This document shows positions 20,413-41,500 of a stretch of 64,000 nt of DNA, piece by piece. The translations under genes were made by a program, and so were the position numbers. The notes under the pieces were generated by a model. That model did not search any database. It was not told the origin of the DNA and saw nothing but the letters and a program-made list of their open reading frames with translations. The first letter of the stretch is position 1. Every line of letters starts with the position of its first letter. Source of the stretch: Magallana gigas (taxonomy: Eukaryota); contig NC_088856.1 in assembly GCF_963853765.1 (NCBI RefSeq), positions 48,112,001-48,176,000 on the forward strand, read 5' to 3'.

Positions 20413-20523
20413 ATGTCGGAGGCAGACGTGGAGAATGGAGACCATGTGGGACTTTTGGCCCAGAAGCCCAACCCGGGCCTCAAATTCGACAAGAAGCTCT
20501 CAGAAACTGAGAGATCCACCCGG
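20413..20523 (+). CDS. AHCYL1: AHCYL exon 1a (MSEADVENG...ETERSTR)
   Basis: ATG after the promoter motifs; donor CGG|GTAAGA, phase 0, matches exon 2. Confidence 0.75.
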
Positions 20524-23500
20524 GTAAGATACGATCAGCCCCCTAGGCGAGGGGGATCCCTATAGTAAACGCTAAAAACTCGTAAATTTTACTACCGTAT
20601 CGTCTTCCGAATTCCGTCGGAGAAAATGTTTGTTTATGTTTTTTGTATGGTGTATGATATTGTTTAATTTCCAATCCTGACCTTGTGTTATGTAGGGATT
20701 AGTTAAAGTAAATCTAAAAAATGTCACGTTTCTTTAGGGAAATGGGGAAATCTTCAGCTCCTGGTGAAATTTCTGTTATTCTGTAATGTGTCAGACAAAC
20801 TCTTCTGTTTCCATCATTGTCGAATCAGATGATCATGACATTGCCTTGACCGCTGCATGAATTCACCACCATCAGCTGGGGAACACTCACCTGTGTTTAT
20901 TTGTCAGATCCAAATGTCTGAATTCTGAAATGAATTCAACTGAAACATAAGTTAGGAATAATACATGTATGTAAATATGAATTGAGATCTTATTACTTTG
21001 TAAAAAAAAAAAAACCAAAAAAACTTTTTTTTACATAATACTTGGAACTTTAAATAAGTTCAGTCAAGAACAGAACCTAGGGATAGTTTTACATCAAGGC
21101 GATTCATTTTATTGCCTTGCAGTAAATCATTTGTTGTAGGATTTTATAGCTGTATTTGACAACAGTGGTAGTTAAAAGATTGGGATGTTATCTCGTGTAA
21201 ACAAGACAACTTCTACAGAAGGCAGAGAGCCTATTCCAGAATACATGGGAGGAAGGGGGGGGGGGTGTGTGTGTTATAACAGAAATTGACCTTGATTAAT
21301 ATTATCCCCTATTATTTCAATATTCATTCTCATTCTCTCACACTTCAGGGCATTGTCGGAAACCCACGGTCGATCTGGCGTCGGAAACCCACGGTCGGTC
21401 TCGCTTCTCTTACCTGAGGTAAGAGAAGCGAGACCTGAGGTAAGAGAAGGGAGACCGACCGTGGGTTTTCGATGATGACTTCAGGTTTGTCTCTAAAAAT
21501 TGAAGTAGAGGGAAGAAATAAAAAAGTAGAAGAGGGGTCTGTGGCTCTACCTTATAGCTACATTGTGTTTGAAATGCAATAATAGCCAGGTAATTAAGGC
21601 ATTATAGGCGGAAATTCCCCGCCCCTGAGTCTTCTTGACAACCTGAGTGTCACACTCCAATGAAAAGGCCCTGTCTCCTATATTATTTCAGTTTAAAAAA
21701 TGGTTGAGATTGTTTATATGACAATGCAATATGAAAGGTACAAAATTTTTGTTTTAATTACCTTAATATGGGTTTGAAATACATGAAATCAGAAACAATG
21801 GAATGATATTGACTCAACTAAATGACCAATTAAACTTTCAAAGAAACGTGATAAATAATGAGCACTCCTGGCATAAACAGAACTAAACAAAAATAAATAT
21901 ATTTTTATGAACATGAAATTGATATTGCTTAAAGCATTTAAAAGAACCCATTTCTGCTGCTTGCTTTTTGTTTCTATTTAACATGTTACACAAAAATTAT
22001 TGCGAAATAAAATGATTTTATCTTAGACAAGGGTCAGTGGGGATGAATTACAAATGAACAAAAGAAGCCTCTTTTCTGCACTGTATAGAATGTCACATTT
22101 TACATTCACAGGAGATACGTACTGTAGCGTTTGCTAATCAAAGAAAAGTAAGTTTCTAAAGCACAATATTAGGTAGCTAGAACTTGTATGTTTCTTTCTT
22201 AATAAAATTATATATTTTAAGATTTAAAAAAAGCATCTATACACAGAAAATACACAGTGGACTGTATTTTGAAGAAATGAAAACATTTGTTTTTCATGTT
22301 TTGAAAAATAATTTGAAGATGGAAGATGCATGTCATTGAATGATGTTTTGCAATCACATCTGTCTTTTGTTAGCCACAGCTTTATCTTAATGCTTTTATC
22401 ATTGAGGTTTACTTAATATCTCACTTTTGAATGGTAATTGGTAATACTAATAGATTTATAATCTCATTGTCTCTGGTAAGTTATAACATCGAAAAGACCA
22501 AGATTTCAAGCAAGTTTATTGGGTGTTTGATTTCTGAAGAATATGTAAGACTTCTATATAATGTTTTTGCTTCGTGTGATCTAAACAATTTTATCAAAAC
22601 ATGGATATCAAATGTCAGTGAAAAATGTCTTACTTAGTTATTCTATGGTTAAGTTATTGGACCATGATTTTCAGTACGAAAACCAGCTATTTTTTCCATT
22701 GGCATGATGATCTGCTTAATTTTCCCAATCAAATTTCCATTAAAAAATGCATTAGAAAAGAAAATTTGTATGCACAATACTCTTATTAAATATTAAAATT
22801 TCTGAACCAGAATATTTGATGTACTGGTATCAAAAGCCCCATAGTGCCCATACCTTAGACTAGACACAGTTGTAGAAAAAAGTTAGGAAAAACAATGTTT
22901 TTCAGTAATATAGGTCTTTTGTCATAATATGTCAAAATGAGTAAAAGAAGAATAATTAAATATTGTATATTTTGTACATAATGATTAATGACATCCGTAT
23001 GTCCCAACTGGCTGGAATACACAGCCACATGACAAGTGTTAATGTTATTTGAAGCTTCATATATTTAATATATTCAACAGAAGCAGGAATAAAGAACTTT
23101 TTATTTATGTAGATGCTGTTAAAATCATTGTTGTGGAAATATGGAAATAAGATAGAATAATTTAACAATTGAAAATTTTCAATGAAAAAAAACAAAATTT
23201 ATTGTAGTACTTAAAACTTTTTTCATTACTATTCTATCCAGTAACTTTTTTATTTTTGTTTTTATAAGCATGTTTGGGATTAACAAAGTTACACAAGATT
23301 TTGATCAATTATCTGTTCATTGCAATTTGATATCAGTTTTTAGCACAAGGTGTAAGTAATAAAGTTTGTCAAAACATTTTATTATTGAATGTAAAATTTC
23401 TTAATTTCTTGATGATATGCATGTAATTAAAATTGCATTTTATTGTTTTAAAATTAATTCATTTTGTAATGCAAAATAACTTCATTTATCATCATTATGC

Positions 23501-38500: not shown

Positions 38501-41500
38501 GATTTCCAATACTTTCTCAAGCCACAGGATAATTAGTCTATTTAACTGACCAATTATGCTTTTACCGTAGTTTATTTACGTTTCGTTGTTTATTTGTGAA
38601 CTAAGAAGGATTAATTGATTGATTGATTGATTAATTAATTTATTAATGTAGATTGTCACAGTATACAAAGTATCAAAAATTTGCCATTCCCCCCTATTCC
38701 TCACTGGTTCCTTCCCCACAGATATACATTGTTATATTCATTTGCAATCATTTCGATATGGTGTAGATAAATTAACTCTGCTTTATGACTGAATCGCTGC
38801 ATTTGTAATTAGATTAAATATTATATTAGAATGCACACCAATATGTCATAGATTAAGTATATATTTTTGCCCAAATATATACCGGTAATGTTGACTCTTT
38901 ACGTTACTTATGATATTTGGCAAAACTTGGAAGGTCATTAACCATTGGTAAGATTCCGGTAGTAAAAATCCAGTTCAAGCACCTTGTAAACAAATAATAA
39001 GCAAATAATGGGGAACAATAAAATATAGTGGAAAGGCATCAGAGTATAAATGAGCATGGAAACAGAAGGAAAGGTTGTATTTATTGTGTTATTTTTTATT
39101 TGTAGCCTCGTACACTGGAAGTTCATCTGATGAAGACGAGGTCAACCCACGGGACAAGAACCAGGTGTGTTAAATATGTTGAAAAATCTTTAAGATCAAA
39201 GGATTAGTGGGATTATCTAATGCAATTGGTCTCTGATTCAGTAGATATAATTGGATAAAATCTTAAACTAGAAGCTCTGCAGCTAACTAAAGATAATCCA
39301 TTGTATATTATCCGTTAGGGTAATAGATGGATCAATTAGTTCAATATTTATTTTAGAGCATTGAATTTCTATTGAATCAGATACATGCTTATAGGATTGT
39401 TTTATATACTGTTAACCAACGATTATTTGTGGCAACTTTATTTCACGATTTGCATGTAAAGACCTGGTACACAGTGATTTTCATTATCAAGATATAGTCT
39501 AAGAGGAAAATACTGTTAGATTCCTTAAATTAAAAGCGAGGAAATAATTTCGGCGTAAAATAGTGAGAAGCAACCCTCGCAGATTTTTAAATCTCGCTTA
39601 AATTTTTTTTTTAGACAGTTTTGAACTAATAGGAAATTATAACCAAAATTGGTAATCGCGATTTTATATTCTTGCGCTTTGATACAAAAACAGCAGAATT
39701 ACAGAATTAAGTACTTGGCAATGTGTAAAATACAGAATTTACAGTAAGATACAAGAGACATTTGAGGACAGGCTTGCGATTAGAATTATTTGCAATGATG
39801 AAGCTCTTGAGAACCTTTTGAAAATTTCATGCACACAAATAGAAGTTGGTTTGCAGTGTATGATTCATTTTCTAATGATTAGACATTTCTATGACAAAGC
39901 AACAGTACCACAGTGCAGCATGATTTGTAAGAAATGAGCAAGTGTTTACATGCATTGATAGGTAACAATAGGTACCAAAAGGAGCAGTGTTATTAGATTA
40001 AAAAAAACATACACTATAACTACAAATTTAATAAGTACACAAAAATTAGGGATCTGGGGAGTTTAATCTTTTATGTTCAGAACGATTCACCGTAAACATA
40101 TTTAATAATTTTATGAATCAGAATAAACATGATTTGACTTTCCTGAGTCAACAGGTTTCGACTTATAAAGGAATCAATTTGAACAGGTGACCAACTGTCT
40201 GTCTAGACAGCACTCAGATTGATTAATGAAAGGGAGATAAAAAAAGATGGGCAGATAATACGTTACATGTACTTGCACAATAGGAAGAGATTTAAACTTA
40301 TTCAGAACCTTCCAGAGATTAGACAAACATACAATTATATAAGATACTGCAAGGGACAAGACTAAGATTAGAAGAACTTGCTGTAATCAGATTTCAGCCT
40401 GAAGAGGGGCTAGATTAGGCAGAAATCAGCTAAGAGAGGTGTTAGACTAAGTGTAGACAGCATTCAGCTTTAAGCAGTGTTAAAGTAGACAATAGTCCGC
40501 TTAAAGTTGTGTTATTGTAGACAGAATTCAGCTTAGAGAGGTGTTAGACTTAGTGTAGACATAATTCAGCTTAGAGAGGTGTTAGACTAAGTGTAGACAT
40601 AATTCAGCTTAGAGAGGTGTTAGACTAAGTGTAGACATAATTCAGCTTAGAGAGGTGTTAGATTAAGTGTAGACAGAATTCAGCTTAGAGAGGTGTTAAA
40701 CTAAGTGTAGACAGAATTTACTGTAGGTTAGAGGGGTGTACCGGTAGGTGTCGAAATTATTCGGCTTAGAGAGGTGTAAATGCCAATGTCATTCAGCTTT
40801 GAGAGGTATTAGTGTAGACATAAATTAGCTTCTAGGAGAGGCTGAACAGTTTAGACAAGCATTCAGCTTAGAGAGGTTTTAGTGAAGACAGTATTCAGCT
40901 TAGAGAGGTTTTAGTGAAGACAGTATTCAGCTTAGAGAGGTTTTAGTGGAGACAGTATTCAGCTTAGAGAGGTTTAGTGTAGAAATCATTAATAGCTGAA
41001 GGAGATGTTACTGTAGATTTATATTGTAGTTCAGATTACATATTTCATGTCAAATTTTAAGGAAATTAACATAATGGAAAAATCCCAGTAAAATCCTCCT
41101 TGTCAGTACAATTTCTTGTATAACAGTGGGAAGGGGGGGGGTTAATTTGGTTGAAATATCATCAGAGCAATTATTCTTAGTTTTTCTTTATTTTTTTCTA
41201 ACTTTGCAAGAGGAGATATTGATGAAGCAATAATTAACACAGTTTAATCTCCTGACAGTCTCAGTATTTTATTACAGAAGAATTCTCTGTTTGATATTAG
41301 ATGGGCTGAACTTCCTACAGCTAGAACCATTTTAACAAGACCTTGGACTTTCAGTAGGATGTAACGATCTATTTCTTGTGTCAAAACAAGTTAAAATGAC
41401 GCTGGTTTCAAGTGAAATATACACCGATTGCGTAGTCTTCCCTCAAAATCCAGAAAATCTTGTTGATTTCAAAGAGCCATGCCCTAGTGGCTTATAATGA

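Follow-up and report, generated by a model that had tools for sequence, protein, structure and literature searches.

Alternative first exons and a small cassette vary the N terminus of the AHCYL (IRBIT-family) protein in the oyster Magallana gigas

Through the IP3 receptor, IRBIT proteins connect calcium signaling with transporters that handle bicarbonate and pH, and both processes are at the heart of bivalve shell building and acid-base balance. Hallmarks of the family are phosphorylation-dependent binding to the IP3-binding core of this receptor and a lack of hydrolase activity. We examined the AHCYL (IRBIT-family) gene on the plus strand of a 64,000-nucleotide (nt) stretch of the Magallana gigas genome (contig NC_088856.1 of assembly GCF_963853765.1, positions 48,112,001 to 48,176,000; contig C4, 48.11 to 48.18 Mb, in our searches). 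This whole stretch is referred to below as the window, and all positions are counted from its first letter. In mammalian IRBIT, the first 104 residues are needed for IP3-receptor binding, Ser68 primes CK1 at Ser71, Ser74, and Ser77, and a PP1 site at residues 40 to 44 controls Ser68 (PMC5173324). As described in PMC7966362 (citing Kawaai 2017 for the variants), the N-terminal variants V1 to V4 of Long-IRBIT (AHCYL2) are distinguished by their stability, their targets, and the cell types that express them, and members of the mammalian family form homo- and hetero-multimers through their core.

Like mammalian Long-IRBIT, the single oyster gene places varied N termini on a common AHCY-like core. 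Unlike mammals, which have AHCYL1 and AHCYL2, the oyster has one gene. Set beside the mammalian Long-IRBIT variants, one tier of the oyster first exons (1c and 1d) drops the whole equivalent of Ser68 to Ser77, which is carried by exon 2. We are highly confident that a single oyster AHCYL gene uses alternative first exons and one small cassette to place different heads on a constant body. Four of the five first exons that had been proposed in a preliminary description of this locus, made without database searches, are real; the evidence shows the exon structure, the splicing of three heads (1a, 1c, and 1d) and of the cassette, the conservation, and the annotation status. The elements of the gene are as follows.

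20413 to 20523, plus strand: coding part of exon 1a (type A head, MSEADVENG...SETERSTR; 111 nt, phase 0), which joins exon 2 or the cassette
22112 to 22147, plus strand: 36-nt in-frame cassette (12 codons, no stop) between 1a and exon 2, with AG and GTAAGT flanks
25860 to 25931, plus strand: coding part of exon 1b (type B head, 24 residues; 72 nt, phase 0), which joins exon 2
27400 to 27484, plus strand: exon 2 (28 residues; 85 nt), which holds the equivalents of IRBIT Ser68, Ser71, Ser74, and Ser77
28906 to 29062, plus strand: coding part of exon 1c (52 codons plus 1 nt; 157 nt, 3n+1), which joins exon 3 and skips exon 2
32631 to 32844, plus strand: coding part of exon 1d (type D head, 71 codons plus 1 nt; 214 nt, 3n+1), which joins exon 3 and skips exon 2
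38159 to 38267, plus strand: candidate exon 1e (36 codons plus 1 nt; 109 nt, 3n+1), with an open reading frame, a GT donor, and a matching phase
39106 to 39164, plus strand: exon 3 (Ser/Asp-rich; 20 residues), the shared acceptor for exon 2, 1c, 1d, and candidate 1e
42606 to 52426, plus strand: thirteen core exons (coiled-coil and AdoHcyase-like domains) with AG/GT borders and a single open frame
53057 to 53063, plus strand: start of the terminal exon (A TAT TAA), which yields the ...NYYRY end with which the models match the RefSeq proteins

RNA evidence for the two routes into exon 3 came from three polyA raw-read libraries of M. gigas (X19, X20, and X21) and from an RNA contig set of a near relative (X9), all placed on positions 27350 to 33349, an interval that contains exon 2, 1c, and 1d. 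The detection limit was 3 reads, and the joints reported are those among the listed ones. The libraries were stranded, with gene exons covered only by pairs whose first mate lies on the minus strand. Reads leaving at 27484, 29062, and 32844 all continued as CCTCGTACACTGGAAGTTCATCTGATGAAG, the first 30 nt of exon 3, which has a single occurrence in the window. Loose ends at 27400/27403 read CGTACTGTAGCGTTTGCTAATCAAAGAAAA, corresponding to positions 22118 to 22147 of the cassette and also unique in the window. The junctions were supported as follows.

Exon 2 to exon 3: 9 reads in X19, 24 in X20, and 4 in X21; present in an X9 contig
1c to exon 3: 5 reads in X19, 15 in X20, and 10 in X21; no X9 contig
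1d to exon 3: 3 reads in X19, 15 in X20, and none listed in X21; present in an X9 contig
1a to exon 2: 6 reads in X20; present in an X9 contig
Cassette to exon 2: 3 reads in X19 and 4 in X20; present in an X9 contig

The junctions from 29062 and 32844 to 39106, which had been predicted from the sequence, were thus found in three libraries for 1c and in two for 1d. Of the listed junction reads that enter exon 3, 1c and 1d together supplied 47% in X19, 56% in X20, and ~71% in X21; this second tier is not minor, and its use is roughly on a par with that of the exon-2 route. The junction reads and the gene model bear out the presence of several N termini on one SAHH-like core, and the two-tier layout, in which exon 2 is either included or skipped, is borne out by 1c and 1d reads that go straight to exon 3. 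No sense-strand joints linking exon 2, 1c, and 1d to each other were seen in the reads on 27350 to 33349, and therefore 1c and 1d behave as first exons. Among the listed joints (at least 3 reads each), exon 2, 1c, and 1d were mutually exclusive, and no loose ends entered 1c or 1d from an upstream acceptor. Reads documented splicing from a head's own donor to a shared acceptor, which is that of exon 2 for 1a and that of exon 3 for both 1c and 1d; for 1b, the documentation is RefSeq identity.

The assignment of the gene to the AHCYL group is based on genome-wide and structural comparisons. When the 519-amino-acid (aa) protein was compared with all six frames of the genome, it matched only this locus and a second locus (C3), which is the canonical AHCY gene and has 33 to 57% identity per exon to the AHCYL query; the claim of a single gene therefore held, with one AHCYL and one AHCY locus genome-wide. 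Exon 8 matched the solved structures of AHCYL2 (3GVP; E = 3e-26) and AHCYL1 (3MTG; E = 3e-25) ahead of AHCY chains (E = 9e-18 or weaker), and both these matches and the identities of the C3 locus place the protein nearer to AHCYL1/2 than to AHCY. Pfam searches with the 1a form and with the near-identical 1d form of Crassostrea angulata returned PF05221 (E = 8e-123) and PF00670 (E = 6e-79), so that the AdoHcyase and AdoHcyase_NAD domains of an SAHH-like, NAD-binding family are both present. Compared to vertebrate IRBIT (AHCYL1), the form made of 1a, exon 2, and exon 3 had 43% identity over 115 residues, with the Ser/Asp stretch and the coiled-coil in common.

When the gene was rebuilt from the sequence, the coordinates, ATG starts, GT donors, and phases of all five proposed exons were correct, and the predicted protein lengths of 519, 506, 506, 525, and 490 aa were reproduced exactly, given a terminal micro-exon at 53057. 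The donor of the last large exon (AG/GTAAGG, at 52426) splices to 53057 and adds A-TAT-TAA, giving the ...NYYRY end of M. gigas isoforms X6 and X7. A second C-terminal end, ...NYYR, would arise by read-through to the TAA at 52427 to 52429; this end is annotated in C. angulata X4, S. cucullata X2, and Biomphalaria X2.

In the exon-2 tier, the model that starts with 1a is residue-for-residue identical to XP_034305386.1 (M. gigas isoform X6, 519 aa), as is the 1b model to XP_034305387.1/XP_034305388.1 (M. gigas isoform X7, 506 aa). The cassette was missing from the preliminary exon list and is a fifth confirmed element; its inclusion gives a 531-aa form, and cassettes at the same position occur in Octopus (16 aa), Gigantopelta (13 aa), and Mytilus californianus (12 aa). 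All four IRBIT serines, whose phosphorylation is a requirement for IP3-receptor binding in mammals, aligned into oyster exon 2, in which a 10-residue run is identical to vertebrate IRBIT. The serine-rich segment typical of the family was found only in the exon-2 forms (1a, 1a with cassette, and 1b) and not in the 1c, 1d, or 1e forms. At the position of the vertebrate PP1 site, KQIQF aligns with GLKF in oyster 1a, which is not a strict RVxF motif, and Pomacea reads RNIKF; compared to the vertebrate motif, the oyster one is degenerate, with L for V/I and no adjacent basic residue. Based on motif matching only, strict RVxF motifs were found at the junction of 1a and exon 2 (REIKF), in the cassette (RTVAF), and in candidate 1e (RNVRF), and none was found with 1b.

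Comparison with an oyster of another genus indicated strong purifying selection on exon 1d. The match spans only the interval from the ATG to 7 bases past the donor (32631 to 32851), with 81% nt and 92% aa identity and a retained GTAAGT donor. Third codon positions account for 29 of the 42 differences, and the ratio of nonsynonymous to synonymous substitution rates (dN/dS) was 0.07 to 0.09, with dS of ~1. The dN/dS check that had been suggested for these exons thus came out in favor of 1d, with its frame and donor conserved. C. angulata isoform X4 is the 1d form (523 of 524 residues identical, with the ...NYYR end), and S. cucullata X2 also carries the 1d head.

The type D head to which 1d belongs has the pattern ..EKM..GRKRHS.QLD[KR][KR]...RRSSNAS.. 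in mussels, clams, unionids, snails, and octopus, and it is also recognizable in mayflies, a dragonfly, and a spiny lobster. In an alignment across molluscs and arthropods, R40, S42, R56, R57, S59, and S62 were invariant. Arthropod type-D-like isoforms (Cloeon X3, Ephemera, Ladona, and Panulirus X12) read PEKL..[FY]K.R..RRRFS....RRSS.AS..S followed by SSYTGSSS, again without the canonical motif; between the two basic-serine sites, compared as proteins, molluscs have QLDKRI.QQL and insects have LPATARYLEL. The canonical SQSSTDS motif was absent from 27 of 27 type D proteins, whose head runs directly into SSYTGSSS. The occurrence of type D across molluscs and arthropods, never with the canonical motif, argues that the two-tier design is old and shared, not an oyster invention. 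From these sequence comparisons, types A, B, and D appear to have been inherited from the molluscan ancestor, and type D at least from the common ancestor of molluscs and arthropods. We tentatively propose that the type D head (PEKL..RKRHS..RRSSxxS) may be a second ancient regulatory head of the IRBIT family, always exclusive of the Ser68-to-Ser77 motif, with its own kinase-primed serines and a different set of partners. None of the papers found refers to such a head.

Two further observations concern 1d. The UniProt entry K1QZ36_MAGGI ("uncharacterized protein," 105 aa), a model from 2012, contains the 1d peptide at 100% identity; it mis-splices 1d (32631 to 32844) to an intronic open reading frame at ~37122 to 37241 and is not a separate gene. 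A spliced noncoding leader for 1d, entered at a shared AG ~40 nt before the ATG, was considered and rejected; no loose ends were listed there, and the X9 contig is unbroken from 31285.

Exon 1c probably starts between ~28111 and 28350, as sense depth begins near 28350 and the X9 contig begins at 28111. The leader from 28350 to 28905 contains one ATG in 556 nt of AT-rich sequence, versus ~10 expected, and this scarcity suggests selection against upstream starts, of the kind that marks real leaders. The 1c form is represented by C. angulata isoform X7 (504 of 506 residues identical), and Saccostrea echinata X4 has the same head. No homologue of the 1c head was found outside oysters among the fetched AHCYL proteins, and on this comparison 1c appears to be an oyster-specific acidic head. 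An alternative 1c donor at 29404 (plus strand) was also observed: one X9 contig that begins at 28111 passes 29062 and joins exon 3 from 29404, and with this donor the 1c frame would end at a stop 42 nt (14 codons) beyond 29062.

Several of these isoforms are already annotated. RefSeq holds at least isoforms X1 to X7 for M. gigas, and the oyster database entries considered here comprise at least 15 members of a 180-member cluster (representative, 532 aa), with X6 and X7 among the M. gigas entries listed. The expectation that automated annotation would under-call this system was therefore mistaken: the 1a and 1b forms appear in M. gigas as X6 and X7, and in C. angulata the 1c form is entered as X7 and the 1d form as X4. 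Molluscs share this layout, and RefSeq already contains it; it is sound rather than new. Homologues of the type A head were found in Mytilus, Mya, Potamilus, Pomacea, Gigantopelta, and Octopus, and those of the type B head (..LSR.RRPSAA..) in Mytilus, Mya, Mercenaria, Dreissena, Potamilus, Patella, Biomphalaria, and Octopus. Among the fetched proteins, types A, B, and D cover the same range of mussels, clams, unionids, snails, and octopus, and tblastn mapped these heads (from Mytilus, Pinctada, Dreissena, Octopus, and others) to 1a, 1b, and 1d, respectively.

The AHCYL1-like sets of molluscs in RefSeq (M. gigas, C. angulata, Saccostrea, Mytilus, Mya, Dreissena, Mercenaria, Patella, Pomacea, and Octopus X1 to X10) share the same A, B, and D heads. 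Like the oyster, they have short heads joined to SYTGSSS and cassettes after the first exon, with no difference in kind. Lineage-specific short heads joined straight to exon 3 occur in Octopus (X9 and X10), Haliotis (X5 and X6), and Patella (X5), and long isoform lists also occur in many arthropods (for example, Varroa X2 to X8, Procambarus X10, and Panulirus X12). The restriction of 1c to oysters and the two exon-2 versions of Mytilus are differences within these molluscan isoform sets. In Mytilus galloprovincialis, X7 and X9 carry two alternative versions of exon 2, DVKFVLTPTKKRLLSRSISASSSTDSFDS and another of 28 residues; no second copy of exon 2 was found by tblastn in the oyster window. 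No exact match to the exon 3/4 junction was found in JGI metagenome contigs, and the literature searches turned up no paper dealing with oyster IRBIT or with AHCYL isoforms of invertebrates.

The preliminary description had linked exons 1a, 1c, 1d, and 1e to CpG-rich sequence. The ratio of observed to expected CpG (CpG o/e) was 0.56 for the window, 1.0 to 1.5 for the 1a region (20101 to 20800), and 0.96 for 1e with its flanks. At 1c and 1d with their flanks, it was at background level (0.55 and 0.46, respectively). CpG enrichment is thus clear for 1a only, with 1e at 0.96, and does not extend to 1c and 1d. The coverage, and the fact that no acceptors were seen upstream, suggest that each head may have its own promoter. 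Most of the 1d sense coverage starts within ~100 nt of the ATG, and sense coverage in the 1d region rises between 31750 and 32550.

Four observations weigh against our main reading of the gene. No places where many molecules begin were listed in the reads on 27350 to 33349; none of the listed loose ends at exon 2 showed a junction with 1b; weak sense coverage of 1d extends back to ~31750, with 19 ATGs between 31750 and 32630; and exon 1e is an unverified candidate defined by its open reading frame. The long, ATG-rich leader that 1d may have would also fit the idea that the 1c and 1d transcripts are by-products (of intronic promoters, noise, or substrates of nonsense-mediated decay) without functional protein, leaving only the exon-2 forms to matter. 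The X9 donor at 29404, which puts a stop after the 1c frame, and the antisense transcript that overlaps the 1c/1d region point the same way. However, we consider this idea very improbable. The dN/dS of 1d is low and its conservation is restricted to the interval from ATG to donor; its motifs are kept from molluscs to arthropods; the 1c leader is depleted of ATGs and the 1c peptide is retained in Saccostrea; and the junctions of both exons are as abundant as that from exon 2 to exon 3. An ATG with an open frame and an in-phase GT is a weak criterion: decoys whose donors score as well or better exist in both introns (for example, 25455 to 25547; 27765 to 27870, donor score of 7.0; and 29726 to 29828, score of 4.9), and shuffled sequence yields 1 to 3 such candidates per intron. 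Independent evidence is therefore required for each exon, and it is provided by junction reads for 1a, 1c, and 1d, by exact RefSeq identity for 1a and 1b, and by conservation for 1b, 1c, and 1d. The five-way system originally described accordingly stands for these four heads, with 1e as a candidate for which the evidence consists of open reading frame, donor, and phase.

Exon 1e may quite possibly be a first exon as described, a view we hold tentatively. It is also possible, if open to doubt, that 1e is a chance ATG-initiated frame in a long AT-rich intron, which would leave four heads, not five. Its donor score of 4.2 is the lowest of the five, with two other in-phase GTs in the frame (38258 and 38345); the decoys at 27765 to 27870 and 29726 to 29828 lie in the same intron, where shuffles give 1.6 to 3.2 candidates; and no 1e-like head was found among 424 fetched AHCYL proteins, sibling oysters included. 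A search with a tick protein returned no oyster representative of 158 to 504 aa, and a 490-aa form would rank approximately 25th in it unless it lay inside a 90% cluster; the oyster proteins belong to the 180-member cluster, whose 532-aa representative exceeds this length range. The entries considered are 15 of the 180 in that cluster, and a 490-aa isoform may exist among the others. Further points against chance are the local CpG o/e of 0.96 versus the background of 0.56 and the short species-specific heads (...A/SYTG) found just before exon 3 in other molluscs (Octopus X9, Haliotis X5, and Patella X5). In addition, RNVRF, an RVxF-type motif, lies within a 12-residue stretch of 1e that resembles the vertebrate PP1-docking segment KQIQFADDMQEF; by our estimate, a strict RVxF is expected in ~4 to 5% of random 36-residue peptides. 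A 29-nt pyrimidine tract (38113 to 38141) and an AG at 38152 to 38153, 5 nt upstream of the 1e ATG, raise another option, in which 1e is a real in-frame cassette (38154 to 38267; 114 nt, 38 codons) between exon 2, 1c, or 1d and exon 3, without a promoter of its own. A phase-1 entry at 38154 would carry the frame across the ATG without a stop and out again in phase 1. Five M. gigas RefSeq isoforms are numbered before the 519-aa X6, and if the numbering follows length, some of them may exceed the lengths reached by exchanging heads. We regard this option as unlikely, considering that no read or protein shows a 1e cassette, that T-runs are common in the AT-rich intron, and that no 38-aa insert at this position was present in other molluscs among the fetched proteins.

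The following scheme is in part conditional. Heads 1a and 1b are joined through exon 2 to a body composed of the Ser/Asp-rich exon 3, the coiled-coil, and the SAHH-like domain, and these forms would be canonical IRBIT-type proteins under different upstream control. Heads 1c and 1d lead directly to exon 3, giving forms that lose the Ser68-to-Ser77 motif. In the 1d form, an ancient head with two conserved sites of basophilic-kinase type (RKRHS and RRSSxxS) takes its place, and this form may be regulated there, while the 1c form may represent a constitutively "unprimed" acidic variant. The heads could thereby alter binding partners and phosphorylation control and, by analogy with the mammalian Long-IRBIT variants, might set target selectivity. 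It is possible that mixed multimers form via the shared core, in which case the ratios of the heads would tune function. Because the gene yields abundant forms that lack the motif required in mammals for binding the IP3 receptor, measuring or knocking down the expression of AHCYL as a single entity would mix functionally different products. The practical gain of the present analysis is modest, since RefSeq already holds the isoforms; its additions are a map of heads to motifs, the 12-residue cassette, and evidence of an old, strongly constrained 1d-type head. The age and constraint of that head make it a defined experimental target and the most interesting residue of the analysis.

Other features were observed in and around the 5' part of the gene, as follows.

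31201 to 31600, no strand assigned: CpG-enriched patch upstream of 1d (CpG o/e of ~1.05); the X9 contig is unbroken from 31285 to 32844 and then continues into exon 3
27752 to 27839 and 28032 to 28109, minus strand: two exons of a spliced antisense transcript, with CT..AC ends at the joint from 27839 to 28032

Within the CpG-enriched patch, the segment from 31475 to 31566 has 85% identity by blastn to a contig of the other oyster genus (L002:142-231), at the same spacing from 1d. The patch is possibly an upstream 1d promoter or part of the antisense transcript. This transcript (26299 to 33349, minus strand) crosses the 5' part of the AHCYL gene: a loose end at 27752 reads 26299 to 26328, with 27752 joined to 26328, and antisense depth covers 30750 to 33349 and is highest at 31150 to 31349 in X20.

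Downstream of AHCYL, an open reading frame at 59489 to 59749 (plus strand) encodes a C-type-lectin-like segment (WIGASDQVEEGSFQWT...CVNGQWNDEHNGQSLNVICEK), and a further exon-like frame lies at 59008 to 59256. These C-type-lectin-like frames (59008 to 59749) probably belong to a neighboring gene. The strongest CpG islands of the window, at 201 to 800 and 1901 to 2400 (o/e of ~2, with 20 to 29 CpG per 300 nt), lie far upstream of AHCYL and presumably mark promoters of other genes.

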